Virus record (IMG/VR): IMGVR_UViG_3300050120_000230
Location: 1-64,000 of that record
Reading direction: 5' to 3' (one strand)
Length of the DNA: 64,000 nucleotides
Within the stretch, counting starts at the first letter, position 1; each line of letters opens with the position of its first letter. Of this stretch, positions 6,226-40,305 are shown piece after piece. Below the pieces are notes generated by a model that saw only the letters and a list, made by a program, of their open reading frames with translations, did no database searches and was not told the DNA's origin. A program made the translations under genes and the position numbers.

Positions 6226-7260
6226 ATGATGAACAGTGTTGTCAAACCCGCGAAGTTTCTGATCGCTATAGTGACGCTTTGCTTCGCGACGATGGCGGCT
6301 GCTCAGAACACTCCGAGGGCTACAGCGTCACAAGGACAGTGGGCTCACTATTCGTCGGCTCAACCATTGATCGCCGTGGCGCCCACGCCAGAGGTCCCCA
6401 AGCCCGTTCCGGTGGTAGTTCCCGCACCTCACATCCAAAATCCCATCGAGCACGCGTTGCAAGTGGCCTTGGACGATTATCGCGCTGGCAAAACCAGTGA
6501 CGACGTGATCGCACGATATGGCGGAACACCATCCGCTTATGGCCACATGCTGGAATTGAACGTCGCCCGCGCACGGGCGCTGCCTTCGGTGTTCCCAGAA
6601 CGCTACGTCGTGGTGAACATCCCCTCGCAAACACTTGATCTTTACGTCGATGGCAAACGTGCCTTGACCATGCGGGTCATCACTGGTCGGCCGGATGCTC
6701 CTACGCCCACGATGGTGACCAACATCACCACGGCCATCTACAATCCCTACTGGAACGTCCCGTGGGAAATGGTGCGTGACACCTATTCGAAACGGGCCAT
6801 GGCCAACTCGCATTACCTGAAGTTGATGCACATGGAAGCACTCGACGGTTGGGGCGCGGACGCCAAGGTCATCCCAGAATCACAGGTTCCGTGGAAGGAC
6901 GTGGCGGCGGGGACGATCTACCAACGCGTTCGGCAGCGTCCGGGTGACGATAACATGATGGGCATCGTCAAGTTCGAGTTGGCGGACAACAGCAAGGGCA
7001 TCTATCTTCACGACACCCCGTTGCGGAAAAACTTCAACGGCACATGGGTTGTGCTTCACGCGATGAGTTCCGGTTGCATCCGTCTCTTCGACGCCAAGAC
7101 ACTCGCCAATGCCTTGATGGGAACGCAGCCCGCGTTTGCCGACACGGAACATCGCGTTCTGCTGACGAAGCCGGTGCCGATTTTCATCACCTATTTCACA
7201 GCGATGCCCAGTGAAACAGGATTGGTCTTCTACCATGACGGCTACGACGCCGATAAATAA
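6226..7260 (+). CDS. L,D-transpeptidase (YkuD domain, YcbB-like), secreted
   Basis: Signal peptide; VVVNIPSQTL, VITGRP..PTP, NPYWNVP, RQRPG..NMMGIVKF, catalytic IYLHDTP...SSGCIRL. Confidence 0.9.
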   Translation: MMNSVVKPAKFLIAIVTLCFATMAAAQNTPRATASQGQWAHYSSAQPLIAVAPTPEVPKPVPVVVPAPHIQNPIEHALQVALDDYRAGKTSDDVIARYGGTPSAYGHMLELNVARARALPSVFPERYVVVNIPSQTLDLYVDGKRALTMRVITGRPDAPTPTMVTNITTAIYNPYWNVPWEMVRDTYSKRAMANSHYLKLMHMEALDGWGADAKVIPESQVPWKDVAAGTIYQRVRQRPGDDNMMGIVKFELADNSKGIYLHDTPLRKNFNGTWVVLHAMSSGCIRLFDAKTLANALMGTQPAFADTEHRVLLTKPVPIFITYFTAMPSETGLVFYHDGYDADK

Positions 7261-7263: not shown

Positions 7264-7737
7264 GTGCGCGAATACATCGACATTCTGGCCGAAGCTCAGA
7301 GCCAAATCCCACCCGAGCTTGCTGCCCAAATCCTTTCAGACCGGCTTTGCAAGCACGGGGTGAAACTGGCGCCGAGCGCACGTCTGTGGCGTGGCGAGGG
7401 TTCTGAAGGCGGAAGCGGGTTCGCCACCTATGGCCGAGGGCTCTACTTCACCGCTGATCGCAAAGTCGCGGCCGAATATGCCGGAGACGATGGCGAGATC
7501 GTCGAAATCGCTCGGGCCTATCTTCCCGACAATGCGCTGCGTTTCGACACCACAAATGATTTCCAGATTTGGAAGCAGAGGGCTTACACGCTGCTGGGCT
7601 TCAGAGGCCCGCAGGAGTTCGCAGCCGCATACGATGATCTTGGCGTTTTCATCCGCACCCTTGATCCGACCATCGACGGCATCCAGATGTTCACGGGCAA
7701 AGACTCCGTCTTCGTCCTCTACGGAATGGACGAGTAA
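7264..7737 (+). CDS. ADP-ribosyltransferase-like late protein with N-terminal tag
   Basis: LWRGE...YGRGLYFTADRKVAAEYA resembles the ART core; TAAATA 4 nt upstream. Confidence 0.55.
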   Translation: MREYIDILAEAQSQIPPELAAQILSDRLCKHGVKLAPSARLWRGEGSEGGSGFATYGRGLYFTADRKVAAEYAGDDGEIVEIARAYLPDNALRFDTTNDFQIWKQRAYTLLGFRGPQEFAAAYDDLGVFIRTLDPTIDGIQMFTGKDSVFVLYGMDE

Positions 7738-7782
7738 TATCCTTGACCGGATAGCGTTCCGTGGGATCATGCCTCAACAGTT

Positions 7783-8052
7783 ATGGAGGCTCCTATGTGG
7801 TTCATGAAGCCGAAGGTCGTGCCGGTTCCTCCGCGTCGAGTTGAACTGCGTCCCGAAGAGAAGACCGTCATCGCGAAGTTCGCCGAAGGCGATGAAGACA
7901 TGAAGCCCCACGCCATTGCGTGCTATCGTCGCAACATCGGCCGGGTGCCGAAGACGACTGCCGAGATGGGCTTCATGGCTGAAATCGATACGCGTTCGCC
8001 CGATCTGGCGATGCGTTCGTATTTCCGCCGCCGGGTGCTCGGCCAAGCATGA
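7783..8052 (+). CDS. Hypothetical protein
   Basis: TTGACC promoter-like sequence upstream; GGAGG suggests a start at ATG 7795. Confidence 0.6.
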   Translation: MEAPMWFMKPKVVPVPPRRVELRPEEKTVIAKFAEGDEDMKPHAIACYRRNIGRVPKTTAEMGFMAEIDTRSPDLAMRSYFRRRVLGQA

Positions 8053-8285
8053 AATCATCTCGTCCCAAGATCGCCCGAATGACCGGAGACGAATTTCGCG
8101 ATTTCAACGCGGAGTTTCCTTATCGTGCTCGCATCCCTATGGGCGAACACGGGACCGACCCGGAACGGGGGCTGATCGAACGCTTTTTTCGAAGCATCAA
8201 TTCGCCCGTGGCGACCAGCACTAATCTCGTCTATCTGACAACGGTCTCCGATCTCACGCTCCTGAAACTGGGAATGTATCGGTGA
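8049..8285 (+). CDS. Hypothetical protein
   Basis: ATGA-coupled to its neighbours. Confidence 0.6.
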   Translation: MKSSRPKIARMTGDEFRDFNAEFPYRARIPMGEHGTDPERGLIERFFRSINSPVATSTNLVYLTTVSDLTLLKLGMYR

Positions 8286-8548
8286 TCCTTCGTGATGTCC
8301 CATGGTCTGATCTGAAGATCGGCCAAGGGGTTTCCGTCACGAGCACCACCGATGTGATGCTCGGCACCATCGTCCGACTCGAACGCGAACCCATGATCTG
8401 GATCGCGTGGAAAGACGGCAACCACCAAGAATATCACCAATCAGTTCTTCCGCATGTGGAATTGCTGGATGAAGTTGAACACGCCGGATCGCACGATTTT
8501 GATAAAATCTTGACCGACCGCGAATTTATTGACGCCGAAGGGGAATAA
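8282..8548 (+). CDS. Hypothetical protein
   Basis: GTGA-coupled ORF. Confidence 0.6.
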   Translation: MILRDVPWSDLKIGQGVSVTSTTDVMLGTIVRLEREPMIWIAWKDGNHQEYHQSVLPHVELLDEVEHAGSHDFDKILTDREFIDAEGE

Positions 8549-8602
8549 ATCTCGGGCGAGGCGGGTCATATAAATATGAAGTCTGTTCGGAGCCCCCGCC
8601 CC

Positions 8603-9160
8603 ATGGAAATGCGTCGCCTCATTGACCTGTCCACCCCGAGAAAACTCACCGAGAGTGAGCAACGAACCATTTTGAAACCCAAGCGCGGTAAAAATGGTCT
8701 TTTCATCGAAGTGAAAGATGCCAGCGCGGAGCGCGAGACGATTGAAAATCACAATCGCGAACGGTTCGCCAATCACTTCCACTACGCAGACAAATTCGCA
8801 GGGAATACGAACACCTTCGATGCCGAGGGCGACTACAACTGCGGGCGCTGCAACCAAGCGGACGACAAATATTGCCTGCTGCTGGATATCAAGTCCATCG
8901 ACCCGGCGGCTGGTAGCTGCGGAGATTGGGAGAACATCGACGCGGGCGATCCCGAGATGATGCTCAATGAGAAATCCCCGGAAGAAGCCGCCTATGGTGT
9001 TGCCGCGAACGGCAAGGGATTCGGATGCCATCGGTGCCCGTTCGCCAGTCGCGCGTTCGAACCCGACAGCCGAGGCCGGGACAAATATTGCGGCAAGGGC
9101 GATTTCCGGGTGTTCGACAATGCGTGCTGCTCTCTGAATGGCGCCGAACTCAAGAAATAA
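8603..9160 (+). CDS. Cys-rich protein with two HiPIP-like CxxC...C...C modules
   Basis: CGRC..C..IDPAAGSCGDW and CHRC..C..CC; TATAAATA at 8569-8576. Start uncertain (8576, 8603 or 8609). Confidence 0.6.
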   Translation: MEMRRLIDLSTPRKLTESEQRTILKPKRGKNGLFIEVKDASAERETIENHNRERFANHFHYADKFAGNTNTFDAEGDYNCGRCNQADDKYCLLLDIKSIDPAAGSCGDWENIDAGDPEMMLNEKSPEEAAYGVAANGKGFGCHRCPFASRAFEPDSRGRDKYCGKGDFRVFDNACCSLNGAELKK

Positions 9161-9215
9161 GTCGTTGACCAAATCCTTGACTTTCTAGCGATCACCGATA
9201 GGTTGCCCCTACACT

Positions 9216-9596
9216 ATGTCGCGGGGTATCATGTCCAAAATCGGTTTCGCCACTGTCGCTCTCGCCGCCTTGCTGCTCACAAGCTGTGAGGCCCCGGACA
9301 ACGGCCCGGAGAATGCCATGGGGCGAGCCAAAGGCTTCGTTGAAGGCATGGGTTGGAAGCCCACTCAAGTCGAGGTGCTCGCCGAGGGCAAGCCCTGCGC
9401 GAAAGCCGAATATGGCGTTCTGGTTCGCGAAGAGAAAGCCCCCATCGACCGGGTCGCGCTGGTGTGCGTGCCGCAAGCGTCCTACACGGTGACCACGGAC
9501 GGTGGTGTGCCGGTGCCCCGCGCGGTGCAATTCTCCGTCCCGGCGAACGTGGCTCCCGCGCCGCCGGAACCGGCTCCGGCCGAAGTCAGCAAGTAA
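9216..9596 (+). CDS. Putative lipoprotein
   Basis: Hydrophobic stretch ending in LLTSC lipobox. Confidence 0.65.
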   Translation: MSRGIMSKIGFATVALAALLLTSCEAPDNGPENAMGRAKGFVEGMGWKPTQVEVLAEGKPCAKAEYGVLVREEKAPIDRVALVCVPQASYTVTTDGGVPVPRAVQFSVPANVAPAPPEPAPAEVSK

Positions 9597-9597
9597 G

Positions 9598-10671
9598 ATG
9601 GCCACATCCACCCAATACAACCCGCAAGTCGAACTCAACAAGGTGCTGCTGAGCGCCGGGGTGAGCAAGACCGTCTACGCTCTCGTCACGCCGGAAACGG
9701 AAGCGACGAAGGCCGTGGCGTTCGGGGATGCGGGTAGCGCCGAGCGCGAGGAATATCTCGACCAGTTTCGGGATGCGTGGACCGGCAAGCAGGATCGTTT
9801 CCACGAAGAGTTCTTCGAAACTTGGGCCGAATGGTCGAAGCCGATGGTCGATCTCGACCGCAAGCTGTTCCCGTTCTTCTATCCGACCGCTGGGGCCAGC
9901 GAGCCGCTTCGTCATCTGATCTACGAGTTCGCCGCCCGGCGATACAAGCAGGGTGCTCTCGAACCGTTCATTCACGTCTTCGAGGGTGAATACGAAGGCT
10001 ACAAGGCTATGGCCGAAGCCGCCGGGCTCGAAGTGATCGAACATGATCGCGCCGACTGGGAAAATGTCGCCGATATTATGGGGCGGGCTGACGACAACCA
10101 CCTCTTCTTCCTGAGCCAGCCGTCCGCCATCGACGGCAACATCTGGGAAGACGCCCCGAAGTTTCTGGCGAAGATTTCCGAGCACATGGCGTGGAGCCAA
10201 TGGCCGGTCGATCCGAGGGTCGTGATGGACCTGACCTATGTCGGCGCCGTCGCCGATGTGAAGATGAAGTTCAACATGAACGAACCCTGCGTCCGCAACG
10301 TGGTGTTCAGTCTCTCCAAGCCGTTCGGCACCTATTACGACCGCATCGGCGGCGTGTTCTGCCGGTGGGAAGACGCGGGTCTGTTCGGCAACAAGTGGTT
10401 CAAAGGTCTCACCGGCCTTCGGATCGGCACGCTGATGATGCAGCGCCATCATGTGTTCGAACTGCCGCGCAAATATCTGCACTATCAGCACCTCGCCGCC
10501 GCGCACGCGAGCAAGGCTCTGGGATTTGAGTTCACCCCGGCCGATGTGTATCTTCTGGCCACGGCGCCTGCCGGAGGCGACTTGCCAATGGCCAACTACC
10601 TTCGACGGGCGGGAAAACTTCGAGTGTGTGTCACGCCCGCGATGGCCAAGATGATCGCGGAGAACGCGTAA
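9598..10671 (+). CDS. PLP-dependent aminotransferase-like enzyme (fold type I)
   Basis: TAGASE, SQPSAIDG, MDLTY, FSLSKPFG..RIG (PLP lysine) and LRVC motifs. Confidence 0.75.
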   Translation: MATSTQYNPQVELNKVLLSAGVSKTVYALVTPETEATKAVAFGDAGSAEREEYLDQFRDAWTGKQDRFHEEFFETWAEWSKPMVDLDRKLFPFFYPTAGASEPLRHLIYEFAARRYKQGALEPFIHVFEGEYEGYKAMAEAAGLEVIEHDRADWENVADIMGRADDNHLFFLSQPSAIDGNIWEDAPKFLAKISEHMAWSQWPVDPRVVMDLTYVGAVADVKMKFNMNEPCVRNVVFSLSKPFGTYYDRIGGVFCRWEDAGLFGNKWFKGLTGLRIGTLMMQRHHVFELPRKYLHYQHLAAAHASKALGFEFTPADVYLLATAPAGGDLPMANYLRRAGKLRVCVTPAMAKMIAENA

Positions 10672-11012
10672 TGGCTTGGCTCCTGACCGCCGACATGGAC
10701 ACCGAAGGCCACGGACGAGAAGGCTTCTTGGACGGATGGCATGTCGTTGCCTTCAGCCGGAAACCGGCCGCGCTCAAAGCCAAGGCGAAAATCGAGGCGC
10801 TGATTTCTGAGATCAATGCAGCGGTTCACGATCTACAACCCTATGAGCGCGGAGAGGCAGTCGTCGAAACTCCGCAGTGGCGTGAACTCGTCGCCTCGTT
10901 CCCGAAAGCGTTCGGAGAATATCCCACCGCCTATTTCAATGAACACGATTTTTCGACGGACAGGGACTTCAACGTCCTGCTCGATGTCGTCCCCTTGGAG
11001 GTTCGTCGATGA
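10671..11012 (+). CDS. Hypothetical protein
   Basis: TAATG-coupled to the PLP enzyme gene. Confidence 0.6.
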   Translation: MAWLLTADMDTEGHGREGFLDGWHVVAFSRKPAALKAKAKIEALISEINAAVHDLQPYERGEAVVETPQWRELVASFPKAFGEYPTAYFNEHDFSTDRDFNVLLDVVPLEVRR

Positions 11013-11845
11013 AGAACATTCAGTGCATCGCCGACAAGGCGGAAATCCACACGTTCGTCATGCGCTTGTGGAAAACGGATATGTTCCGTGAGTCTCATAG
11101 GGCTGGCGGGTTCATCTTCCGAGCCGTCGAGCGGTTCGCATGGCTTCCGCGCGTGTTCGCGGAGATGTCGAACGATCATCTGGAACGGGCTCACTTCTCG
11201 TCATGGTGGGGCGTGACGATGCTGCGCGAGGATTACACCAACCCGGTCATCCACGATCTCTATCTTCTGCACGAATTCTACCACGCCGCCCACATGCCCT
11301 ACATCCCGAACATCGGGAAGGCGGCCTTCGACGACAAGATGCAACGCAACGAACTCGAAGCGAGCGTCCTGTCCGAAATCGCGGTCTACTTCGAGATGCC
11401 CGGCCTACGCGAAGTGTCCTTCGATCACGACATCTACGCGGATCGGTTCCTCAACGACCCGGTCATGAACGTGCTCTGGAAGACCAACAAGGACGTGGCC
11501 GTCGAGACCATTCGCTCGATGCGTCGGGACGTGATGGTCAGCAAGCCCGAACACCTCATGGACCTGACGGAAAGCTGGATTCGTCGGTTTGCCGAGCAGA
11601 ACGCCATCTACTCGATTACGTGGTCGGATCGCTATCTGGAAGTCGAACGCCGGATGGCGGACTTGCAGACGCAGGCCGCCGCCGACCGGAACGATGCCCT
11701 GAAGTACCACGTCGATTGGATCATTCGCGAAGCCGAACGTGATCCACTGGACAACGTGCCTTTCCGTCAAGAGGCCGAACTGTTCGCTACGTTCTATTGG
11801 GCGAACAAGGAAAAATATTCGGTGGCAATGGCGAAGAACAAATGA
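11009..11845 (+). CDS. HExxH-motif protein (putative metalloenzyme)
   Basis: LLHEFYHAAH with downstream NELEAS; clean 278-aa ORF. Confidence 0.65.
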   Translation: MKNIQCIADKAEIHTFVMRLWKTDMFRESHRAGGFIFRAVERFAWLPRVFAEMSNDHLERAHFSSWWGVTMLREDYTNPVIHDLYLLHEFYHAAHMPYIPNIGKAAFDDKMQRNELEASVLSEIAVYFEMPGLREVSFDHDIYADRFLNDPVMNVLWKTNKDVAVETIRSMRRDVMVSKPEHLMDLTESWIRRFAEQNAIYSITWSDRYLEVERRMADLQTQAAADRNDALKYHVDWIIREAERDPLDNVPFRQEAELFATFYWANKEKYSVAMAKNK

Positions 11846-12033
11846 CCCGTTCCGAGGAATACCGCGCCAAGGCGGCCGAGATGCGCGACGAGGCGGCGAA
11901 GACGAACCTGCCGCTGGTGCGTCAACAGCATCTCATTGCCGCCAAGGTGTGGGACAGCATGGCCGACCGCGAAGATCATGCGATCCGCCAAGCCGACGAC
12001 CGTCGCGCGAGCATTCAAAAGGAACCGGGATGA
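11842..12033 (+). CDS. Small helical hypothetical protein
   Basis: Starts MTRSEEYRAKAAE; coupled ORF. Confidence 0.6.
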   Translation: MTRSEEYRAKAAEMRDEAAKTNLPLVRQQHLIAAKVWDSMADREDHAIRQADDRRASIQKEPG

Positions 12034-12052
12034 CGTTTATGGTCACCGTCTG

Positions 12053-12514
12053 ATGGGAATGCCCTACGCCCTTCTGAAGCAAGACAAGCCCGAGGTTTTC
12101 GACCTTGGGAAGGGCGTTCGCATGGTCGGTTGGACCGAAGTGTTCGAACGCCGCTACGGGCCTCCCTTCAGCAATACCCCGGCGGACATTTTCAACATCT
12201 TCGGGTCGGACGACAAGGGCAATTTCTTGGAGCCGTTGCAGTCGCTCGATTTGGCGCTCCTGACCAAACGTCTCGAAAAATTCGATCACGGATATTCGGG
12301 CGAGGCGGCGGTTGTCGCCAAGCGGATCATCGACTGGATGGGTGACGATGTCTGCTATCTTTGCAACTACTGGGAAGAGCTTTCCGGCTGCATCGAGAGC
12401 CGCATGAGCGCGAAGAAAATCGCTGCCGAGTTCAACGATCTCGCCGTGAAACTTTCGGTCCCCATGGCCAAATACAAGGAAACCGGCGACGTGTGGGGCT
12501 CGGACCATGACTGA
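12053..12514 (+). CDS. Hypothetical protein
   Basis: ORF in a co-oriented cluster. Confidence 0.55.
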   Translation: MGMPYALLKQDKPEVFDLGKGVRMVGWTEVFERRYGPPFSNTPADIFNIFGSDDKGNFLEPLQSLDLALLTKRLEKFDHGYSGEAAVVAKRIIDWMGDDVCYLCNYWEELSGCIESRMSAKKIAAEFNDLAVKLSVPMAKYKETGDVWGSDHD

Positions 12515-12902
12515 AAAACTTCAGCGCACAAAATTCGCGATCTATGATCCCACGACGAAGCTCTTCGTTTCGAAGAAACGTGGCTATCTCCAAAACATTT
12601 GGACTGACCAGTTCGAAAACATTCAGAGCTATGCCATTCCGAGCAACGCACTCGAAATACAGCAGTGGGCGAAGTCCATGGCGCCTGCGGCCGAGATCAT
12701 CGAATTGACGATCACACTGGAATGGACCACTGCAAAGTCCGACTTCTCAATCGAAGACACGTCACAGTTCAAGAAGCACAAGGCGTTCTACGACAAGTTC
12801 CTTCCGGCGGTTGAGAAGGACGTGGACTCGCTGAGTGACGCCGACTGGAAGCGTTTCAAAAACGCTCGATATTTCCTTCAACGGGCAAAGGTCATCCCAT
12901 GA
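12507..12902 (+). CDS. Hypothetical protein
   Basis: Overlap-coupled ORF. Confidence 0.65.
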   Translation: MTEKLQRTKFAIYDPTTKLFVSKKRGYLQNIWTDQFENIQSYAIPSNALEIQQWAKSMAPAAEIIELTITLEWTTAKSDFSIEDTSQFKKHKAFYDKFLPAVEKDVDSLSDADWKRFKNARYFLQRAKVIP

Positions 12903-13276
12903 GTTTCGCATCCGTGGCCTGTCCCGAGACCGATAAACCGTGTTCGGCTATCTCATGCGTAAATGCGGGAATTCCACTCTCGACGTGCATTCACCGTGGT
13001 GTCGAGCAGTTCGTCGGCCGCTCGCACGGTGATCCCCGGACGGAGATCATCTGGAAGAGCCTGCCCTACTATCCGCACGGCTTCATCGTGCCCGCGCTGA
13101 ACACACAGAATACGCCAACAGCGATCCTGAACTGGCTGGACGAAAACTGCGAGTTCGGCGACTGGGTGCGCTATTTCGGGACGTTCCGTTTCAAGTCGAA
13201 ACAAACGTCCGACTCGTTTCGTCTCTGGCTTCTCGAACAAGCTCGCCCTGACTTGAAGAAAGTTCTCGCAGCCTGA
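12899..13276 (+). CDS. Hypothetical protein (WL...F.F.....F.L family)
   Basis: NWLDENC...FRFKSKQTSDSFRLW. Confidence 0.6.
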   Translation: MSFASVACPETDKPCSAISCVNAGIPLSTCIHRGVEQFVGRSHGDPRTEIIWKSLPYYPHGFIVPALNTQNTPTAILNWLDENCEFGDWVRYFGTFRFKSKQTSDSFRLWLLEQARPDLKKVLAA

Positions 13277-13420
13277 TGTTCATGCGCTGGCGCCTTCCCA
13301 AGCGGTTCTGGGGTCATCCTGACAACTGGAACGATGCGGCGTGGGACGAATACATGGATCGCGGCATGAGCGGTCACTGGTATGATCGGCTCGTATGCTG
13401 GTGGAGAGGGTGGGAAAAGA

Positions 13421-13630
13421 GTGTCTAGGCCAGAACTGCATCTGCAAGTCGTTCGCGAAGCGGTTGTCGAGAAACTGTCGCTGGGCGGCGAAGTAGTATC
13501 CGACGCGGGCGTTGATCGGATCGTCGATCAAGTGATGACAATGCTGGAAAGCAAAGCTATCGGGACCATTGCCGAGTTGCACGCCGGTATTGACGCAGCC
13601 ATCGCGAAAGAACTCGGGCGCGGCAACTGA
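13421..13630 (+). CDS. Hypothetical protein
   Basis: GTG start in a co-oriented cluster. Confidence 0.5.
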   Translation: MSRPELHLQVVREAVVEKLSLGGEVVSDAGVDRIVDQVMTMLESKAIGTIAELHAGIDAAIAKELGRGN

Positions 13631-13686
13631 TATTGTTGACAGCATGGAAACCTGTGAGATCATCTGATCTCACATAGGAGCCCTGC

Positions 13687-13956
13687 ATGACCAAATCCGT
13701 TTCTTACATGCCGAGCGTTTTCTGGGTCGCCACGGTTCACCGCGACTCCGAGACGATTCCGATGAGCCTCTGTTCGATGATTTCTGATCTTTGGGGCCGA
13801 GACATCGAAACGGTGAAAACGGACGTGGCCGAGCGGATCGTCATTCTCCGTAAGCGCCACCGCGCGGTGGAAATCGCCCATCATGAAGAAATCTCGTTCG
13901 GTGTTGCCGAACGGCGTGCGGAGCAGGAAGCCAACACGAAGGTCGAATTCGCATGA
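13687..13956 (+). CDS. Hypothetical protein
   Basis: TTGACA promoter-like sequence and AGGAG SD upstream. Confidence 0.65.
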   Translation: MTKSVSYMPSVFWVATVHRDSETIPMSLCSMISDLWGRDIETVKTDVAERIVILRKRHRAVEIAHHEEISFGVAERRAEQEANTKVEFA

Positions 13957-14243
13957 ATACCTGCAACATTGAGCAAGGCGCCGAAGGTCCGGTGTTCGCC
14001 TGTGCCTATGAGAACATGGGCAAGGCGCTCTATGAGACTTCGAGCCGACTGACGCCGCGCATCGTGGTCGCCGACAAGATCGGCGACGGTAGTGCTGGTG
14101 TCGAGATCGCCATCGAGTATTCGGAAAGGTCCGATCACACCAACAAGCACATCGTCTTGGCACCGGTTTTCACCCCCGCCATGGCCCGGCAATTCGCAGC
14201 GCGCCTGATGGAAGCTGCCAATGAAGCTGAACAGGTGGTCTGA
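13953..14243 (+). CDS. Hypothetical protein
   Basis: ATGA-coupled ORF. Confidence 0.6.
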   Translation: MNTCNIEQGAEGPVFACAYENMGKALYETSSRLTPRIVVADKIGDGSAGVEIAIEYSERSDHTNKHIVLAPVFTPAMARQFAARLMEAANEAEQVV

Positions 14244-14656
14244 TGATCGTATGCGTAGAAGAATGCACCGAAACTAAGATCGGCCAAACCCCCGGCACGC
14301 CCGAGGGCTGGCGTGACTCGCGCGACTATGCGCGAGACTCTTCCACTAGTTTCATCCGCGTTGATCGGCTTGCCGCCAACAACCCGCTGCGTGTGGCTAT
14401 CGAACACGCCATTGCATGGCAACGGGAGATGGGTGACGAGCGGATGAACTACGACTATGACGGCGAACTGCCGTATCCCTATTCGTCTTCAATTTACGCG
14501 AACACCAACGGCGCGAGCGACTCCGAGGTGTTCGTGGAAGACCACGAGTTTCCCCTGATGGTGGAAGCCAGCATTCGTCTCTGCATCGAGGAAGATGGGG
14601 CAGTCGTTCGCCAGTTGCGCGAAGCTGACGTTCGCAAGTGCATCGAGAACGGTTGA
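14243..14656 (+). CDS. Hypothetical protein
   Basis: TGATG-coupled ORF. Confidence 0.6.
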   Translation: MIVCVEECTETKIGQTPGTPEGWRDSRDYARDSSTSFIRVDRLAANNPLRVAIEHAIAWQREMGDERMNYDYDGELPYPYSSSIYANTNGASDSEVFVEDHEFPLMVEASIRLCIEEDGAVVRQLREADVRKCIENG

Positions 14657-14706
14657 CTTAATCTCTTTGGTCAACCATTCTCCCATAGCTTAGCTTGGGG
14701 GTTCAA

Positions 14707-14979
14707 ATGGCTAAATGGCGGGATATTTTCAAAGGCATCGGAACATGTATTCTACTGCTTTTCGCTTTCCTGATACTTCGGTCGTGTGATCCAGACGTAG
14801 AGATCAAGCGGGCACAGGCACGAGCCGATGATGCATATGCCCTAGCGGACGAAGCACGAGTAAAGCAAGAAGACGCTGAAAATCGGTTGGCTGATACTGA
14901 GACAAAGCTAAAGGATGCAGATGACCGATTAACGGCTATCGAGCAAAAAATCTGCGGAGGGAGCACCTGTGATGAGTAA
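14707..14979 (+). CDS. Membrane-anchored coiled-coil protein
   Basis: N-terminal TM segment followed by a heptad-rich region. Confidence 0.6.
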   Translation: MAKWRDIFKGIGTCILLLFAFLILRSCDPDVEIKRAQARADDAYALADEARVKQEDAENRLADTETKLKDADDRLTAIEQKICGGSTCDE

Positions 14980-15502
14980 TCGGATGTTCAAGACAATTCT
15001 CATCGCCGGTGCGGTTCTGATGCTCGCGGCCCCAGTCCATGCGTTAGAACGCGATGGCTTCCGTGTCGGAATGACGTTTGACGAGGCCCAAAAAACTGTG
15101 CCGCTTGGCTACTCTCTCAAGCTTCTTCCGAATGCCACTTCTATTTTCCAAGCCTACATTCCCATAAATGATAGGCAAGACGTGTTTGGTAGCCTCGCGT
15201 TTTGTCGTGGCCATTTGATTTCCTATGCCAGCCCAAATATTAACGTGGACGGCGAATACATCAACGAAGTTGAGAGGGCGATTTCTATCTATGGCTCCCA
15301 GCCCAGAACAAAAGTAATTAGTTCTTCGTGGTCTGGTAGAGGCGGCGGCACGATCCAAACTATGTCGTTGACTTGGACTCTGGTTTCCGGCGAGCAATAT
15401 GAAATTGATCTACTTCCCCAAGGCCACGATTCATATGGTAACGTTAGTCACATAGCGTCGGCCTTCGTCCGCATCGCTGCACAAAATACCCGTTGTAGCT
15501 GA
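14972..15502 (+). CDS. Secreted/periplasmic hypothetical protein
   Basis: Signal peptide ending PVHA; GFRVGMTFDEA; lower GC than neighbours. Confidence 0.65.
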   Translation: MSNRMFKTILIAGAVLMLAAPVHALERDGFRVGMTFDEAQKTVPLGYSLKLLPNATSIFQAYIPINDRQDVFGSLAFCRGHLISYASPNINVDGEYINEVERAISIYGSQPRTKVISSSWSGRGGGTIQTMSLTWTLVSGEQYEIDLLPQGHDSYGNVSHIASAFVRIAAQNTRCS

Positions 15503-15566
15503 AAATATTGACCACGGTTGGGCGAACAGGTAACTTGAGAGCATAGCTCATCAAGGATATATTCAA

Positions 15567-15698
15567 ATGACTACCTCTAAAAAAGATGCCAGCAAAGCTG
15601 GCAAAATCCTGCGCGAAAGCAAGGATAAAGACATGAAGAGCGTCGCGGCTTCTGATTTGGCCCAGACGAAACGAAATACCACGAAGAAAAAGAAATGA
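15567..15698 (+). CDS. Small basic protein, not in ORF track
   Basis: AAGGA SD; MTTSKKDASKAGKILRESKDKDMKSVAASDLAQTKRNTTKKKK. Confidence 0.6.
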   Translation: MTTSKKDASKAGKILRESKDKDMKSVAASDLAQTKRNTTKKKK

Positions 15699-15952
15699 TC
15701 GGTTCGCGCATCACAACTCTCTTGGGTGTGGGTTCCATCCAAAAGATTAACGGAAGCATCGCAACCGTGAAATTGGACGAAGCCATGAAAGTCATGGCGA
15801 CCCAAGAAATCTTTGACACGGTTGATGTGAATACCGCCGAAGAACCTCGTGTGGGAATTTATATGGCCGTGCTACCGGTCTTAAATAATCCGCCGCCCGG
15901 TGACCTTGGCGATCAACTCTATCATAAGGCCAGTCTCCGGCGTCTCGCGTAA
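15695..15952 (+). CDS. Hypothetical protein
   Basis: ATGA-coupled ORF. Confidence 0.5.
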   Translation: MIGSRITTLLGVGSIQKINGSIATVKLDEAMKVMATQEIFDTVDVNTAEEPRVGIYMAVLPVLNNPPPGDLGDQLYHKASLRRLA

Positions 15953-15978
15953 GGAAACCCCTTTTCATAAATACTCGT

Positions 15979-16473
15979 ATGCGCGAGTTCATGAATATCG
16001 TCAACGAAGGTCTGGCCGGAGAGGACGAGATGCTCAGTGAGGCAACACCGCGAAACTTCGGAAAATGGGCGGCGAGCATGGCCGGAGCAGCCGCGCTGGC
16101 GGCGGGGCTCAGTGGCTGCTCTGACACAACGTCTGGCAGTCCTACACCGGTTGTGAGCAAGGCAGATTGCGAGAGTGATGGCGGTGCCGGGTGCGAAACG
16201 GAAGCCGACAGTCCAGAAGGCGCCGAGGCTATCGACTATAAGAACGAGTGGAACAGGCGCCTTTGCCTTGCACAAGGTGGTGACTGGGACTCAAGTTCCA
16301 TGATACCCACCAAAATTGCCGATCACCCGCTCCGTGGGATGTGTAGCAATATAAGACAAAGAGATGCTTGTGCCGATGTTGGGGCCTGTCCCGAACTGGA
16401 TGATAAGGGCATGAAACAATGGGACAGGGATTGGTGGAAAGCGCACCCGAATCTCATCCAACCGAAACCGTGA
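15979..16473 (+). CDS. Late protein with N-terminal tag, internal lipobox and Cys-rich body
   Basis: TAAATA 5 nt upstream; MREFMNIVNE...LSEA...AAALAAGLSGC. Confidence 0.65.
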   Translation: MREFMNIVNEGLAGEDEMLSEATPRNFGKWAASMAGAAALAAGLSGCSDTTSGSPTPVVSKADCESDGGAGCETEADSPEGAEAIDYKNEWNRRLCLAQGGDWDSSSMIPTKIADHPLRGMCSNIRQRDACADVGACPELDDKGMKQWDRDWWKAHPNLIQPKP

Positions 16474-16514
16474 CCAATTTCCGATAATGCATCATGTGCG
16501 CGTAAGGGATCGCG

Positions 16515-16718
16515 ATGGAACCTAAACTGACCGTGAAATTCTACGTTTCGGCATATGACGAAAGCGGCTACGGGGACAATCGATCAAAAGATTTCGACAG
16601 TGGTGACGCCGCCGTAGCGTATGCCGAATCTTTGGAGGCCCGGTTCCACGCGTCGGTCTATAAGCGGATCACGATGGAGCCCATGAGCATCCAAATTTGG
16701 CCGATCCGCGAACCTTGA
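16515..16718 (+). CDS. Hypothetical protein
   Basis: AAGGGA SD; short ORF. Confidence 0.55.
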   Translation: MEPKLTVKFYVSAYDESGYGDNRSKDFDSGDAAVAYAESLEARFHASVYKRITMEPMSIQIWPIREP

Positions 16719-17025
16719 TGTCCACTGCGCGAGCTTCTCGCGCATCGTATGCATTCCATCGCATCCGGGCGATCACGATGTTCGCGTCGGTGACTGATCC
16801 AAGTTCGAAATGCTGGGTCACTGGTTGGTTCGGCCAATGCACAGCGTGGCCCAATCTCTGCAACTTATAAACCTCGTTGCGTTCCGGCATAGGCTTGGCA
16901 TCGAACTCCTGCCAATCGGATTGGTAGAACTGCGAGCCGAGATAGTGCCAACCGGGATGATGCTCGTCCAACCAGTCGTGAACCTCTGCCGTTTGACGGT
17001 AGAGGATCGGAAACGTCATAATCAT
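16669..17025 (-). CDS. Hypothetical protein
   Basis: Coupled to the upstream minus-strand ORF. Confidence 0.5.
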   Translation of the reverse strand: MIMTFPILYRQTAEVHDWLDEHHPGWHYLGSQFYQSDWQEFDAKPMPERNEVYKLQRLGHAVHWPNQPVTQHFELGSVTDANIVIARMRWNAYDAREARAVDIKVRGSAKFGCSWAPS

Positions 17026-17183
17026 TTGGCGCGCAGACGTTCGATCTCGTCGGCCGCTTCGTCCAGTAGATCGGCGATACGATCCCGCTGGCCTTCCTGA
17101 ACGGATTTTCGACTCGGTATTTGGCGCCTGATTTCCGCACGTTTGCGGAGCCGGTAGACCAGATCGGTTTCATCCTCAATCAT
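17022..17183 (-). CDS. Small hypothetical phage protein, not in ORF track
   Basis: MIEDETDLVYRLRKRAEIRRQIPSRKSVQEGQRDRIADLLDEAADEIERLRAK; ATGA overlaps at both ends. Confidence 0.7.
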   Translation of the reverse strand: MIEDETDLVYRLRKRAEIRRQIPSRKSVQEGQRDRIADLLDEAADEIERLRAK

Positions 17184-17707
17184 TTCGTTCCACGATTTGG
17201 CTCAAGGCCAACCCACGTCAAAATTGTTTCCAGCCCGGCCCAGAAGCCGATCCCGTCGAGGATCGGGTTCAGGATGTTCGTCAACGGGCAGTAGCGACGA
17301 TCCTCATGCCTGTGATGACCATTGTGGTGGTTCGGAGACTGGATGATCCCGATCTCCTGCAACATCAAAAATCTGCCCGGCCGGTGCGTGAGAACATGCA
17401 CTTCGTTCAACAGCAGGCCACCCAAAGTGGCGAAGAACCATACGAACGACGGACCCGCGAGACCAAACCAAACGGCGCTCACGATGCTGACGGCAACCCA
17501 CGTTTCGATATTGCGATAGATCAGAGAGTTCCCGAGGAAAGACTGTGGATCAGAATGATGTAGGCGATTGGCCTTGATGACCATCGGCCCGATCAGCGGC
17601 ATGTCTTCTCGTCCCACACGGTCTTCCCACCAGTGAAAAACGCCACCCGCAAAATCTGCGATGAGCCAACCGAGCAATGATTGGCCAAAAATTCGGAAAT
17701 CGTCCAT
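17180..17707 (-). CDS. CarF/TMEM189 (Kua-B) family lipid desaturase
   Basis: ADFAGGVFHWWED, RLHH, NEVHVLTH, LQEIGIIQSPNHHNGHH..YC histidine pattern; TM helices. Confidence 0.85.
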   Translation of the reverse strand: MDDFRIFGQSLLGWLIADFAGGVFHWWEDRVGREDMPLIGPMVIKANRLHHSDPQSFLGNSLIYRNIETWVAVSIVSAVWFGLAGPSFVWFFATLGGLLLNEVHVLTHRPGRFLMLQEIGIIQSPNHHNGHHRHEDRRYCPLTNILNPILDGIGFWAGLETILTWVGLEPNRGTK

Positions 17708-17723
17708 GTCTCCTATTTATGGG

Positions 17724-18062
17724 TCAGACCATCTTTAACATCAGAGCGAACTTCTCGCGGGCTGCGACAAGCTCAGCCGAGAGTCCTTTGATCTGTTCGA
17801 CCAATTCTTCGGCTTCTTCCAGAGTTTCGACCCGTTTCACGACATGCTTCATCTCGACTTCGTATTGGCCGGGGTTTCGAGATTGAAGGACCGCCGGATG
17901 AATAGCGCGCGTCCAAGTGTATTGCGGAACAGTGACCAGCCCTCGTCCCAAGGACGCCAGACTTCGGCCGATATAATTGCCGTTGTTCGATTCCCGCCAA
18001 AAGCTCCGAACCTCGAAGACATTCCACACGCCGTTTTCGTCGGAGACGAGGACGTAGCTCAC
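17724..18062 (-). CDS. Hypothetical protein
   Basis: GTGA-coupled ORF. Confidence 0.55.
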   Translation of the reverse strand: MSYVLVSDENGVWNVFEVRSFWRESNNGNYIGRSLASLGRGLVTVPQYTWTRAIHPAVLQSRNPGQYEVEMKHVVKRVETLEEAEELVEQIKGLSAELVAAREKFALMLKMV

Positions 18063-18247
18063 TGGTAGTCTTCCGGGTAGAGATGCATCACCGCGCCGTT
18101 GTAGCGCGACAGCCACGTCATGAGCGCCTTATCCATGGCTACGGCACGAACAGAGTTGCCATGATGCAAGGCAACTCGCTTGGCGCGGCCGTAACGGCGC
18201 CATTTGCGTTCGCACTTTCGCATAAACTTGTAGAGCTTGTGATCCAT
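18059..18247 (-). CDS. Hypothetical protein
   Basis: Short ORF in a minus-strand cluster. Confidence 0.5.
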   Translation of the reverse strand: MDHKLYKFMRKCERKWRRYGRAKRVALHHGNSVRAVAMDKALMTWLSRYNGAVMHLYPEDYQ

Positions 18248-18265
18248 TGGACCACCGTATCGTAA

Positions 18266-18529
18266 TCAGATGCCGAAGAACATTTTGAAAAGCGTCGCTG
18301 CTTCCTGATCCTTGAAGAACGCGCACTTCATGCTCGGGTGCGGGGCCTCGTTCGGAGCACAGATCGTATACCATCCATCGCCTCGCCCGTTTTCACAGAC
18401 GCCGACGTTCTCTCGCAACCATTTGAAGCCTTCTCTACTCAGCCAATGGCCTTCGAGATGATCCGGTGATATTGCAACCCGGTAGGGATGATACCCGGAA
18501 CTGTCTTTCTTTGTCGAAGTAGGATGCAT
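18266..18529 (-). CDS. Hypothetical protein (WL...F.D..A..FK family)
   Basis: KWLRENVG...AFFKDQEAATLFKMFF. Confidence 0.6.
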   Translation of the reverse strand: MHPTSTKKDSSGYHPYRVAISPDHLEGHWLSREGFKWLRENVGVCENGRGDGWYTICAPNEAPHPSMKCAFFKDQEAATLFKMFFGI

Positions 18530-18566
18530 CCCACATTATGCCCTCTAATGCTGCATGGGTCCAACA

Positions 18567-18950
18567 ATGACGTTCTATCACGCCACCTATCGACATCGTC
18601 TGGATTCCATCCGCCGACATGGGCTGACGCCCACGGTGGCTGATCCCAATTTCCCCGGCGCGGAGCCCGGCGTCTATTTGGCGTCCGATCCGATGATTCC
18701 GGTGGCGTTTTTGCTCGAACACAGCATCGAAAACGCAAATGAGAAGGATAATCCGAGCCAAATCGTCGAAAACTTCGTGGTTATCGTCATCGACGACTCG
18801 CGGCTGGACAAACGGAAGCTAGGTCCCGACCCACAACTGTCAGAGCAAGAAGGCTTGTGGTGCTATCGCGGTGTGATCGATGTGACGAACATGCCAATAT
18901 TGGATATCGCGACCTTGCAACTATCCCACTTGCCTGCCGACCACAGTTGA
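18567..18950 (+). CDS. ART-fold protein (Tpt1/KptA- or DUF952-like)
   Basis: FYHAT...LDSIRRHGL.P...GVYLA motif. Confidence 0.6.
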   Translation: MTFYHATYRHRLDSIRRHGLTPTVADPNFPGAEPGVYLASDPMIPVAFLLEHSIENANEKDNPSQIVENFVVIVIDDSRLDKRKLGPDPQLSEQEGLWCYRGVIDVTNMPILDIATLQLSHLPADHS

Positions 18951-18980
18951 GCTACGGATTGGGTGAGCAGGAGAACCCTC

Positions 18981-19382
18981 ATGAAGACTTTCTACACCTC
19001 GAACTATGAACGCAGCAGCACGAGCCCCCTCGCCGTGTCCATCAGCAACCCCGCCGATGTGCCCGCGACCTACGAAGGCGCCCGCGATGCCGACCTGTCG
19101 CCGACCGACGACCTTCTGGAACGCTACCACGCCCGCGACGTGAGCCATGAAGGCTACGCCGCCGCCTACATCGCGCTGCTCGGCGAGCGCGGCATCACGC
19201 CGCAAAGCATCGCCGACAAGTTCGAGGAAGGCACGATCTTCGTGTGCTACGACTACGAGGACGGCGCCAGCGGTTCGGAAGATGCCGACACCGGCACGGC
19301 CGACGACCTGAGCATCTGCCACCGGGTGTTCCTGTCCAAGTGGCTGAACGATTCCGGCGTGGTCACGATCTCCGAAATCTAA
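18981..19382 (+). CDS. DUF488-like protein
   Basis: LSPTDDLL..Y, FVCY and CHRVFLSKWL motifs; AGGAG SD. Confidence 0.65.
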   Translation: MKTFYTSNYERSSTSPLAVSISNPADVPATYEGARDADLSPTDDLLERYHARDVSHEGYAAAYIALLGERGITPQSIADKFEEGTIFVCYDYEDGASGSEDADTGTADDLSICHRVFLSKWLNDSGVVTISEI

Positions 19383-19486
19383 CGCTCCGAGAGGGCTCTG
19401 TGAGGCTGTCAGGACGTTTGTTCTGAGAATAGCACCACGGAGCCCCCGGTAGTGCTAAGAGCCGCCCACGGCCCGGAAAATGGCCT

Positions 19487-20131
19487 CTACGCGGCCATTG
19501 ACGCGCGCTTGGCGCCTGTCATCAGATCGGCGATCTGTTTCGTGAGAACCGGATCGAGCACGACTATGCTGCCGTCTGCCTTTTGCATGAAGTTCGACAG
19601 GCCGAGATCGAAGTGGAAATCTTCGGGATCGGGGTCCTTCTTCTTCACGAACTGCATCAAGTCGTAGAGGATGTGGCCCTCGAAGTCGCCGAACGAGCGC
19701 ACGAACGCTTGCAGCGACATTTTCTCCATGAAGAAACCGCGTTTCTCGGAGTGGGTCAGGAACTTGTGGTAAATTTGGTTGAAGGTCGTGATGATCTTCT
19801 TGACCATGCGCTCGTTGTCTTGATCGAGCCGTTCGTATTTCGGCATCTCGAAGATGTAGATCGGGAGCGCCTTGAACTTTGCGATCTTGTGCGAGCCTGA
19901 CTGGTATTCTCCCAGACGCTTTGCGATACCGAGGTGATCCAGCCATTCACCCTTCATCTTGTCGCGAGTGAGCAGGATGACGTTGCCGTCACCTTTGTCC
20001 AGCGCCAGACTGCTGACGCCTTGGCCAAGCACCCGCAATCCCTTGAACTGCTCTGGTACTTCGTCCTGCTGAACGCCGACCCATTGATGTTCCGGCGCCT
20101 CGCGGAGAATGGCGAAATCGCTGATCTTCAT
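19487..20131 (-). CDS. Protein kinase-like protein
   Basis: Gly loop VLGQGVSSLA, catalytic HFDLGLSNFM, VVLDP; start MKISDFAILRE lies just after the upstream stop. Confidence 0.65.
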   Translation of the reverse strand: MKISDFAILREAPEHQWVGVQQDEVPEQFKGLRVLGQGVSSLALDKGDGNVILLTRDKMKGEWLDHLGIAKRLGEYQSGSHKIAKFKALPIYIFEMPKYERLDQDNERMVKKIITTFNQIYHKFLTHSEKRGFFMEKMSLQAFVRSFGDFEGHILYDLMQFVKKKDPDPEDFHFDLGLSNFMQKADGSIVVLDPVLTKQIADLMTGAKRASMAA

Positions 20132-20135
20132 AGAA

Positions 20136-20702
20136 TCAGGGGCGGGGAATACGGGGCGACGCGGGGGCTGCTTGCGGAGTTTGCTGCTGTTGAGCCGCAG
20201 CGCGAGCGGCTGCACGTTCTGCATCGGCCTTGCGCTGCTCGATAGCGTCCCATGCTTCTTCTTCGGCTTCGTCTTCGCTGTGCCATGCACCCGACCACGT
20301 CTCTTCACCGGTCAGACGGAAGTAGTAGCCTTCGCCAGCACGATCTTCTTCACCGTCCGGGTCATCGTAGAAGAACTCGATCTCGAAAGGATCGTCTTCC
20401 ATCTTGGAAGGCCAGCCGGTGTTGGATTCGGTCATGACGGGCTCGATGTCGTCGAGGGTGAGGCGTGCAACATATTGCTCGCGACCATCTTCCTGTTCGT
20501 CATCGAATGCAACGAACACGTCAGGAGCATAGTCACTGCCGTGGTGACTGGGTTCGGAGCCGACCATGACACCTTCGCGGCCGGTCGCAGTTTCGCGAAC
20601 ACGCGCACCGTCTTCAGGGGCATCGTATTCGGTGTGGTGCACTTCGCCGTTGGGGTAACGAAGCTCGTTCGCTTCGTTGATGATGTCGATATACTTACGC
20701 AT
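20136..20702 (-). CDS. Acidic late protein with N-terminal tag
   Basis: AAGGAG SD; starts MRKYIDIINEA. Confidence 0.65.
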   Translation of the reverse strand: MRKYIDIINEANELRYPNGEVHHTEYDAPEDGARVRETATGREGVMVGSEPSHHGSDYAPDVFVAFDDEQEDGREQYVARLTLDDIEPVMTESNTGWPSKMEDDPFEIEFFYDDPDGEEDRAGEGYYFRLTGEETWSGAWHSEDEAEEEAWDAIEQRKADAERAAARAAAQQQQTPQAAPASPRIPRP

Positions 20703-21999: not shown

Positions 22000-23022
22000 T
22001 TATGCGAGGGGTCCGCGCACATCTCCGTAAACTTGCCACGTCACGAAGCTCGCGCCTTCCACGGCAGAGCCCGCAGGACCACCGTTTAGACCCGGTCCAC
22101 CAGCACTTGCGGTGCTCGCCAAGCCCGGTTGGCCTTCATCGCCACCGGCGCCACCAGCGGTGGCTTGAGCCCATTCCTTGGAGCCTTGGTTCGAAAGCGT
22201 CCCCGCCGCACCACCGTGACCGATGCTTCCCGGCTGACCGAGAAACGATCCAGAACGGAAGCTGCCGCCACCCGGACCTTGCGTGATGCCCGCGCCGCCG
22301 CCGCCACCGGTGCCGGGGTCATCGAAGCCTTGCGACGGTCCAGCGCCAGCACCGCCGCCGCCACCACCACCACCGCCGCCGATAATGCCGTTGTTGTAGA
22401 TCGTGGTCGCGACTCGCGCCTTGACAGCCACGCCACCAATGGAACCCGGCGTCGGAGCATCGACGGCCGCGTGTGAGTCGTCGTAGAGCCCGCCGTAGCC
22501 ACCGGCGCCACCTGAACCGATGATACCGGTTCCTGAGTTGACGAAGAGGTTGACCACGGAGCCCAAAGGCAACAGGCCCGTGTCGAACGATGGGAGGGCC
22601 AGATTGTAATCGAGGATGCGGCCTTCGGCTTGGCCACCATGCGAATAGTGCCACTGGGCGTAGGAGATCAAGCCCCTAGCCCAACCTGCTCCGGCCGAGA
22701 CCACGTCCGGGTAACGGTCGAGGTAGGCTTGCCAATTGATGGTAGATGCCGTCGAGGACCCGAGATTGCCGACGACGGTGATGTTGGCCACGACAGGCGT
22801 CAGCCCATCCCATTGGCCGGTAGCCGTTACCGAGTTGAAGACGTTGTAGTTGAAACCCGAAATGTTGTCGGTGAACTGGAAGCTCTTGCTGAAGACAAGA
22901 CGCCAGACGCCTTGGTCCTTGACCCACACTTCTTTCGAATCCACCCAGCTACCGCCGTTGTGGATGAAAATTTGTTTGGCCTTACGCCACTGGCCGGAGA
23001 ATGCATATGTCTCAGCGACCAT
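22000..23022 (-). CDS. Gly-rich adhesin (gp38-like) fibre tip
   Basis: Trp-rich N-terminus (QWRK..WVD..WRLVF) and polyglycine loops. Confidence 0.7.
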   Translation of the reverse strand: MVAETYAFSGQWRKAKQIFIHNGGSWVDSKEVWVKDQGVWRLVFSKSFQFTDNISGFNYNVFNSVTATGQWDGLTPVVANITVVGNLGSSTASTINWQAYLDRYPDVVSAGAGWARGLISYAQWHYSHGGQAEGRILDYNLALPSFDTGLLPLGSVVNLFVNSGTGIIGSGGAGGYGGLYDDSHAAVDAPTPGSIGGVAVKARVATTIYNNGIIGGGGGGGGGGAGAGPSQGFDDPGTGGGGGAGITQGPGGGSFRSGSFLGQPGSIGHGGAAGTLSNQGSKEWAQATAGGAGGDEGQPGLASTASAGGPGLNGGPAGSAVEGASFVTWQVYGDVRGPLA

Positions 23023-39751: not shown

Positions 39752-39755
39752 ACTG

Positions 39756-40302: not shown

Positions 40303-40305
40303 ACG

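Follow-up and report, generated by a model that had tools for sequence, protein, structure and literature searches.

Tagged genes in the window

The DNA considered here is the first 64 kb (the window) of IMGVR_UViG_3300050120_000230, a 415,409-bp linear viral record with a GC content of 55% and a completeness of ~72% (IMG/VR and CheckV). The sole sequencing run listed for the record is a DNA run of a peat metagenome. Our subject is a short N-terminal leader, called the tag, that opens putative late genes encoding unrelated proteins; we call the protein behind a tag its cargo, and we name genes by the coordinate of their start. A sequence-only reading of the window had proposed such a tag, reminiscent of the targeting sequence of phage T4 internal proteins, at the N-termini encoded at 7264, 15979, and 20702, and in looser form at 20131 and 8609. 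All five N-termini are present. The features are as follows.

7254–7259, + strand: TAAATA late-promoter-like box, 4 nt before a GTG start and overlapping the stop codon of the upstream YkuD gene
7264–7293, + strand: tag MREYIDILAE, followed by Ala; type A, 10 residues, predicted cleavage after Glu10 (strict regular expression, profile)
7264–7737, + strand: tagged cargo gene with GTG start, 157 aa, ADP-ribosyltransferase (ART)-fold-like domain (Pfam, Foldseek, VIA)
8569–8576, + strand: TATAAATA box, 27–33 nt upstream of the Cys-rich gene starts at 8603/8609, with GGAG between; not the leaderless arrangement
8603–9160, + strand: Cys-rich protein with a doubtful extended tag; start at 8603 (MEMRRLIDL..) or at 8609 (MRRLIDLSTPRKLTE then Ser, 183 aa)
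15968–15973, + strand: TAAATA box, 5 nt before ATG
15979–16473, + strand: tagged gene, 164 aa, MREFMNIVNE then Gly (strict regular expression, profile)
19487–20131, − strand: kinase-like protein, 214 aa, borderline tag MKISDFAILRE then Ala; starts 5 nt past the stop of the 20702 gene
20136–20702, − strand: tagged gene for an acidic protein of 188 aa without known domain; tag MRKYIDIINE then Ala at 20673–20702
20712–21968, − strand: tail-collar-like gene (Pfam Collar, E=0.0097), directly upstream of the 20702 gene
22000–23022, − strand: Gp38 adhesin-like gene (Pfam GP38, E=5.6e-6), upstream of the collar-like gene

Each tagged gene follows a late-type box or a late fibre gene, as had been claimed: boxes precede 7264, 15979, and 8603/8609, the 20702 gene follows the collar/fibre-like gene, and the 20131 gene follows the 20702 gene. 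The 20702 gene is Shine-Dalgarno-led (AAGGAG) and is the last-but-one gene of the late fibre operon.

The tag across the genome

A strict regular expression, run on the six-frame translation of the whole record, matches four times, and every match lies at the start of an open reading frame (ORF). The fourth, outside the window, is MRQYIDIVSE at 214276 (+). On a BLOSUM profile of these four tags, the seeds score 31–36, and 0 of 613,093 non-start six-frame positions reach 31. The same profile scan also raises the N-termini MREFINLLE, MREWINLVE, MRDFINLVE, and MRDLMNLVE. A second register emerges from a scan of genes linked to TAAATA boxes: MRYREIIGE, MRYHEIIRE, MRAHEIMTE, MRYWEIISE, MRAREIFE, and MRVLDLFE. 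Aligned on Glu, both registers read aromatic/aliphatic-x-[DENQ]-[IL]-hydrophobic-(x)-E, and the full signature, M-R-x-aromatic/aliphatic-x-[DENQ]-[IL]-hydrophobic-(x)-E, spans 8–13 residues. Type A tags carry Tyr, Phe, or Trp at position 4 and Ile or Leu at positions 7 and 8. The tag is real, and its extent had been underestimated: the genome-wide scan finds the signature on ~30 genes of the record rather than on three to five.

Enrichment is seen by two further measures. A loose regular expression matches 23 of the 49 TAAATA-linked genes, 26 of the 598 other genes, and 3.1% of internal Met positions. A Glu-anchored matrix, which combines the two registers (..I-L-x-E and ..L-F-E), assigns a score of at least 8 to 34 genes, a count that is circular in part, the matrix having been trained on these same genes; 0.5% of internal Met positions pass. 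All 34 matches end in Glu, and the P3 residue is hydrophobic (I/L/M/V/F) in every one but the doubtful match MSTILNE at 220747. For the two looser tags of the window, the sequences are as read and their status is weaker. The 20131 tag is borderline (matrix score 6.8, a level met by ~1% of internal Met positions), and the 8609 tag is doubtful (4.3, under the threshold), having only the MRRLIDL start in common with the others and its first L-x-E at residues 13–15.

The nucleotides beneath the tag are not conserved. Arg is encoded by CGC, CGT, CGA, AGG, and AGA, Leu by five codons, and Glu by both of its codons, and the Ile codons vary as well. Synonymous sites are free to vary, and thus selection on the tag acts at the protein level.

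A modular leader on unrelated proteins

With their first 14 residues removed, 38 tagged proteins from across the genome fall into 35 BLAST clusters, and the five proteins named above, minus their first 12–14 residues, have no BLASTP similarity to one another. Their description as unrelated is borne out. A single paralogous family as the source of the tag is ruled out by the 35 clusters and by the differing Pfam domains.

The 7264 protein illustrates the modularity. In its AlphaFold 2 model (pLDDT 84.9), residues 1–12 form a low-confidence helix outside the confident globular domain. Twelve metagenomic homologues keep the order of tag, variable linker, and domain; one of them bears the other tag type, MRWKEINEA, and another has an extra insert of ~110 residues between the tag and the ART-like domain. 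No 7264 homologue was found in five related large contigs, indicating that the cargo is variable, and a tblastn search with the 7264 protein against phages gave no match. The term “ART-like” has tentative support for this protein at the level of fold and not as a Pfam match passing the cut-off: Pfam ART-PolyVal is below the cut-off (E=0.041), the best Foldseek match has E=0.12, and VIA-align gives Z values of at most 5.3, with most of the 39 chains at Z of at least 2 having an ART fold. The top VIA-align match is a domain of a cyanophage pre-ejectosome protein.

The other cargo of the window is diverse. Homologues of the 20702 protein retain RKY[IL]DI[IL]xE-A. The 8609 protein is indeed Cys-rich (11 Cys in 183 residues) and has no Pfam or PHROG match. 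“Kinase-like” for the 20131 protein stands on two PHROG matches, its sole basis (PHROG 3809, E=1.5e-7; PHROG 15752, protein kinase, E=6.5e-5), and a PDB sequence search with it gave no match. The 15979 protein is an orphan, with no homologue but itself among 5.8 billion proteins. Behind its tag comes a lipoprotein-type signal (K-W-AASMAGAAALAAG-LSGC; ..AALAAGLSGC..) and then a Cys-rich C-terminal part. A start at an internal Met, residue 18, would yield a classical lipoprotein precursor, and two products are therefore possible.

Elsewhere in the record, recognizable enzymes stand behind the tag. Pfam identifies ART-PolyVal domains at 106555 (67.7 bits) and 267428 (46.4 bits), with weak matches at 248514 and, as above, 7264; ADPrib_exo_Tox, a C3/Alt-like ART, at 369263; NUDIX at 128329; GNAT at 196781; and a cell-wall hydrolase at 102294. 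The 315077 gene encodes a 496-aa protein with the tag MKIEDLFE then Ala, of which residues 14–166 match the anti-CBASS protein Acb1 (Pfam, 128 bits). That an Acb1 gene is both late and tagged suggests packaging for the next infection. It is the second gene of a two-gene tagged late operon outside the window, at 313545–316564 (+), whose first gene (510 aa, MADIRKFMDMLSE then Glu) lies behind a TAAATA box.

TAAATA boxes and presumed late expression

Genome-wide, 49 genes have [C/A]TAAATA 3–6 nt, mostly 4–5 nt, before the start codon. The boxes of this kind in the window lie at 7254, 15968, 17713(−), 28659(−), 29451(−), 39756(−), 47886(−), 49993(−), and 54764. A Shine-Dalgarno-like motif accompanies 3 of these 49 genes versus 244 of the 598 others. 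Likewise, 21 of the 34 best-tagged genes start 4–5 nt after TAAATA and have no Shine-Dalgarno motif. The TAAATA set also includes large structural genes (28653−, 39751−, 49987−, and 278445+), homologues of which are in the virion of a relative, Agrobacterium phage Atu_ph07. The sequence-only reading had seen boxes before tagged genes; it had missed how close they lie to the start codons and the missing Shine-Dalgarno motifs.

The T4 late promoter is TATAAATA, which the TAAATA box resembles. With T4-like spacing, transcription would start at the A of the ATG or at a neighbouring position, and the mRNA would be leaderless. The sequence arrangement suggests that leaderless late mRNAs arise from T4-type late promoters joined directly to start codons. 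In Atu_ph07, the gp55-like sigma factor is encoded just before the point at which our record begins, and no such gene was found in the record. Neither Atu_ph07 nor the head modules of other relatives have the TAAATA-N4-5-ATG arrangement, and five genes of the record (20702, 214276, 128329, 310906, and 315077) carry a tag and no TAAATA. Tag and promoter are therefore separable.

Relatives and their virion proteins

The record represents a jumbo-phage lineage that is new and distant from T4, Polybotosvirus-like, with genomes of 415–490 kb. When 14 kb of the window was compared by megablast with 50,697 phage records, no near relative at the DNA level emerged. At the protein level, 104 ORFs are common to the record and Atu_ph07, a 490-kb Polybotosvirus, with 25–59% identity and in long syntenic blocks; among them are those for terminase (59%), tail sheath (47%), and baseplate proteins. 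Four large related contigs, each at least 90% complete, are at a roughly equal distance (55–59% identity in a baseplate protein).

The virion of Atu_ph07 is described by a published electrospray tandem mass spectrometry proteome (Attai et al. 2018) in protein-level tables. There, a link between tag and virion is apparent. Trained on the present genome alone, the matrix selects 31 ORFs of Atu_ph07; 21 of these 31 are in the virion list versus 115 of the 1,174 other ORFs (Fisher p=5e-14). The tagged virion proteins are gp33, gp43, gp47, gp53–gp63, gp205, gp206, gp407, gp408, gp482, gp487, gp561, gp594, and gp672; gp numbers were assigned by molecular mass, and annotation confirms gp33, gp43, gp47, and gp53–gp63. 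Their tags take the forms MRWxQLTE, MRLIDLLE, and MSxxLRKFxNIxNE then Ser-Tyr. Most belong to protein families other than those of the present record, and their starts are Shine-Dalgarno-led. The proteome paper lists them as hypothetical virion proteins and makes no mention of a common leader. Atu_ph07 sheath, baseplate, fibre, portal, and neck proteins bear no tag.

Two side observations concern the gp53 group. Eleven consecutive paralogues, gp53–gp63, occupy 39484–50592 of Atu_ph07; every one of them is listed in the virion proteome and starts M[RK]W.QL[TNI]E or MRLFQLLE. In our record, a 58-aa ORF at 222653 (+), outside the window, starts MRWKEIIANE then Ser, and its residues 2–52 align at 49% identity with the last 51 residues of gp53, a 778-aa tagged virion protein. 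From its sequence, this ORF encodes an apparent tagged mini-protein matching the tail end of a large protein.

Relatives also possess the predicted protease. Atu_ph07 gp204 is a gp21-type protease (Peptidase_S77, 77.5 bits), and its neighbours gp205 (MDFRQIRALLE then Gly) and gp206 (MSIRKFLNIINE then Ser) are both virion proteins. A Peptidase_S77 protease is present in 44 related viral contigs, including the four that are at least 90% complete; these four all bear the head module. In 16 related contigs, the protease starts MALVLTE.., the scaffold M(D/E)(N/K)GL..LLE then S..LNE then Glu, and the capsid protein M(T/S)KLFE then SNW..AL(C/L)E then Gly. Protease, scaffold, and capsid protein are canonical gp21 substrates, and each begins with L-x-E sites that resemble the end of the tag. 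In two related contigs (L070 and L072), tagged genes (MRAYELYES, MSGQDLRKIMNLMES, and MRYNELTES) adjoin the protease.

Our record carries a single trace of a capsid gene, a 47-residue piece like the major capsid protein (MCP) at 252122–252262. It lies in a 183-aa ORF outside the window, 252032–252583 (−), in which 47 residues are 51% identical to residues 73–119 of the Atu_ph07 MCP and positions 3–45 of the Pfam Gp23 profile are matched (65.9 bits). This ORF may be a capsid N-arm fragment, a decoy, or a remnant.

What the tag may do

The analysis establishes a modular tag that is enriched at gene starts, is under selection as protein sequence, and in a relative marks virion proteins. We consider it probable, by sequence logic combined with the published virion proteomics of that relative, that the tag is a T4-type capsid-targeting and propeptide signal. 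The notion is that the leader, a short amphipathic segment with Arg/Lys at position 2, aromatic or aliphatic anchors, a hydrophobic P3, and Glu at P1, would dock unrelated proteins onto the scaffolding core during prohead assembly, so that the shell encloses them. A gp21-family prohead protease would then cut after Glu (I/L-x-E), freeing the mature proteins inside the head, and the cargo would exit with the DNA at the next infection, as suggested by T4 precedent and by the kinds of tagged enzymes. The cargo would be made late, mostly from TAAATA boxes 4–5 nt before the start codon, and would consist largely of host-modifying or counter-defence enzymes (ART-fold proteins, Acb1, NUDIX, GNAT, kinase-like, and cell-wall hydrolase), which would be most useful on arrival.

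The T4 leaders to which the tag had been likened are confirmed: in the T4 record, ipII and ipIII have the leader MKTYQEFIAE then Ala, and ipI has MKTFKEFTSTTTPVSTITE then Ala. MREYIDILAE is identical to MKTYQEFIAE at positions 1, 4, 9, and 10 and conservative at 2, 6, 7, and 8. The ten-residue T4 leader is enough for packaging, with residues 4 and 7 responsible for targeting and residues 8 and 10 for processing (PMC9026906). These four mapped positions, functional in T4, are the conserved positions of the tag here. The sites at which the ADP-ribosyltransferase Alt of T4 is cut are ITE-6 and LTE-619 (PMC5694885).

Several points weigh against this interpretation. Cleavage after Glu in this phage group we infer from sequence and by analogy, and the Glu is absent or irregularly placed in a few tags (216724, 369263, and 8609). 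The T4 leader scores 14.5 on the four-seed profile, a level that 176 of 613,093 null positions reach, and only 2.2 on the Glu-anchored, mixed-register matrix; thus, the likeness is positional, one of pattern, and we claim no statistical homology. The Atu_ph07 enrichment is inflated by 13 tagged proteins that form one paralogue family. Counted as families, there are 9 virion families versus ~10 non-virion matrix matches, and the independent count is ~9–14 families. The “virion-associated” list itself includes contaminants such as RecA-like and single-stranded DNA-binding proteins. The lipoprotein export signal directly after the 15979 tag fits poorly with a head-internal protein. Finally, searches of the record with Pfam Peptidase_S77 and by tblastn with the Atu_ph07 protease, portal, and MCP yielded no portal, gp21-type protease, or full capsid gene. 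Core proteins are 45–59% identical to those of Atu_ph07, so head genes would be findable if present. The protease, portal, and full capsid genes presumably lie in the absent ~28% of the genome.

Could the conserved 5′ end serve expression instead, as the initially transcribed sequence of the TAAATA promoter or as a ribosome-start element of leaderless mRNAs? The coincidence of 21 of the 34 best tags with closely spaced boxes and missing Shine-Dalgarno motifs speaks for this idea, which we regard as scarcely credible. Synonymous sites vary freely; 26–28 of the 49 TAAATA-linked genes, including large structural ones, are untagged and have diverse second codons; and the five tagged genes without TAAATA, together with the Shine-Dalgarno-led tagged genes of Atu_ph07, which have no TAAATA-N4-5-ATG, dissociate the two features. 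Codon variation, the untagged TAAATA genes, and the Atu_ph07 genes largely refute any such nucleotide-level explanation, promoter or leaderless. It is also highly improbable that the tag is a relic of common descent or cassette shuffling, an exon-like N-terminal piece spread by recombination and lacking present function. Some tagged proteins do have the ART fold in common, and among T-even phages the swapping of internal-protein cassettes is considered to be favoured by the conserved leader. Against a relic, the pattern is kept across lineages with 25–59% core-protein identity, whereas the residues just behind the tag are not conserved, and the tag nucleotides differ at most synonymous sites, indicating that the copies are old and under purifying selection.

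A virion-incorporation signal that works differently from that of T4 is unlikely. The tag could be an uncleaved docking helix for the portal, inner body, tail, or baseplate, or a peptide by which a phage AAA+ chaperone or translocase recognizes folded proteins and brings them into the head. Virion association alone is what Atu_ph07 documents for tagged proteins, and our record has a ClpX-like protein at 393844, a homologue of the Atu_ph07 ORF at 1385. Iyer et al. propose that phage BCS1/ClpX-like ATPases may translocate proteins into heads, and they do so for this jumbo-phage group (PMC7824862). On the other side, the tag ends in [ILMV]-x-E, which is gp21-type specificity; the same type of site opens the protease, scaffold, and capsid protein of relatives; tagged genes adjoin the protease gene; and known tail, baseplate, and fibre proteins lack the tag. 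These features favour the T4-type targeting and propeptide signal.

A broader proposal, to which we lend slightly less than even credence, concerns a family of 400–500-kb jumbo phages to which Atu_ph07, the peat phage, and dozens of relatives from metagenomes would belong: all would pre-load 20–30 proteins, ~5% of genes, including Acb1, ARTs, NUDIX, GNAT, and kinase-like proteins, by means of a single universal leader of 8–13 residues. Counter-defence and takeover would thus begin before phage transcription, the leader would make it possible to read the ejected proteome of uncultured phages straight from their genomes, and in the present lineage the same genes would also be expressed from leaderless late mRNAs.

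Neighbouring genes

Two envelope-modifying auxiliary genes, as judged from sequence, adjoin tagged genes: a YkuD L,D-transpeptidase at 6229–7260 (+) (79 bits, with an N-terminal hydrophobic segment) and a lipid desaturase at 17180–17707 (−) (106 bits). An untagged 127-aa protein at 18567–18950 (+), whose start includes ..MTFYHATYRHRLDSIRRHGLTP.., looks by eye like the first motif of H-Y-E-type ADP-ribosyltransferase/Tpt1-like enzymes, and it has no Pfam match at E≤0.01.

Implications

The kind of system proposed is known from the T4 capsid-targeting sequence (CTS). What stands out here is the scale, the enzyme cargo, and the link to apparently leaderless late genes. If the tag does work as in T4, a simple rule would predict the proteins that accompany the DNA of uncultured giant phages. 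Such proteins are otherwise difficult to recognize, and anti-defence and host-takeover functions are common among them. Were an Acb1-type enzyme or an ADP-ribosyltransferase packaged, it would be active before signalling by the host immune system builds up, a point that bears on how jumbo phages contend with CBASS-like systems. The tag could also be a portable packaging signal for placing foreign proteins in large capsids, a use to which the T4 leader has already been put. Finally, the short distance between TAAATA and ATG on 49 genes suggests that leaderless mRNAs can arise from T4-type late promoters.

Comparison with known systems

In the literature searched, coverage of which was incomplete and gives no proof of novelty, a capsid-targeting sequence is nowhere described for Rak2-like or Atu_ph07-like phages. 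The closest parallel is the CTS of T4 IPI, IPII, IPIII, and Alt. Both are short N-terminal leaders on unrelated proteins, made late in T4 and apparently so here, with Lys/Arg at position 2, an aromatic residue at 4, an acidic residue at 6, hydrophobic residues at 7 and 8, and a terminal Glu. The T4 internal proteins and Alt are non-essential, and their leader is removed by the gp21 prohead protease; relatives of the present phage have a protease of the gp21 family. Cargo with an ADP-ribosyltransferase (Alt in T4) and a late-type promoter motif (TATAAATA versus TAAATA) are further likenesses, and the doubtful extended tag at 8603/8609 is similar in length to the 19-residue leader of T4 IPI. The differences lie in number (~30 tagged genes versus 4–5), in length and register (8–13 residues in two registers), and in cargo: mostly enzymes here (Acb1, NUDIX, GNAT, ART-PolyVal, and kinase-like), small basic DNA-bound proteins in T4. 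Moreover, start codons here lie directly behind the promoter box, and cleavage and ejection are predicted.

In giant phages of the phiKZ-like group (phiKZ, 201phi2-1, and SPN3US), a T4-related prohead protease likewise cuts many head-internal proteins, some of them in paralogue families, on the C-terminal side of Glu (PMC5694885). The site there, however, is S/A/G-x-E, and the propeptides are long and dissimilar, whereas the leader described here is short, uniform, and ends in I/L/M/V-x-E. A different kinship is with the MuF-linked polyvalent proteins, which carry ART, GNAT, and nucleotide-signal-degrading domains into the host along with the DNA (PMC7824862); ART-PolyVal, the Pfam family matched by tagged proteins here, provides the link. 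Polyvalent proteins join many effector domains in one giant polypeptide with a head-morphogenesis anchor. The present phage, in contrast, has separate small genes, each with a tag of its own.

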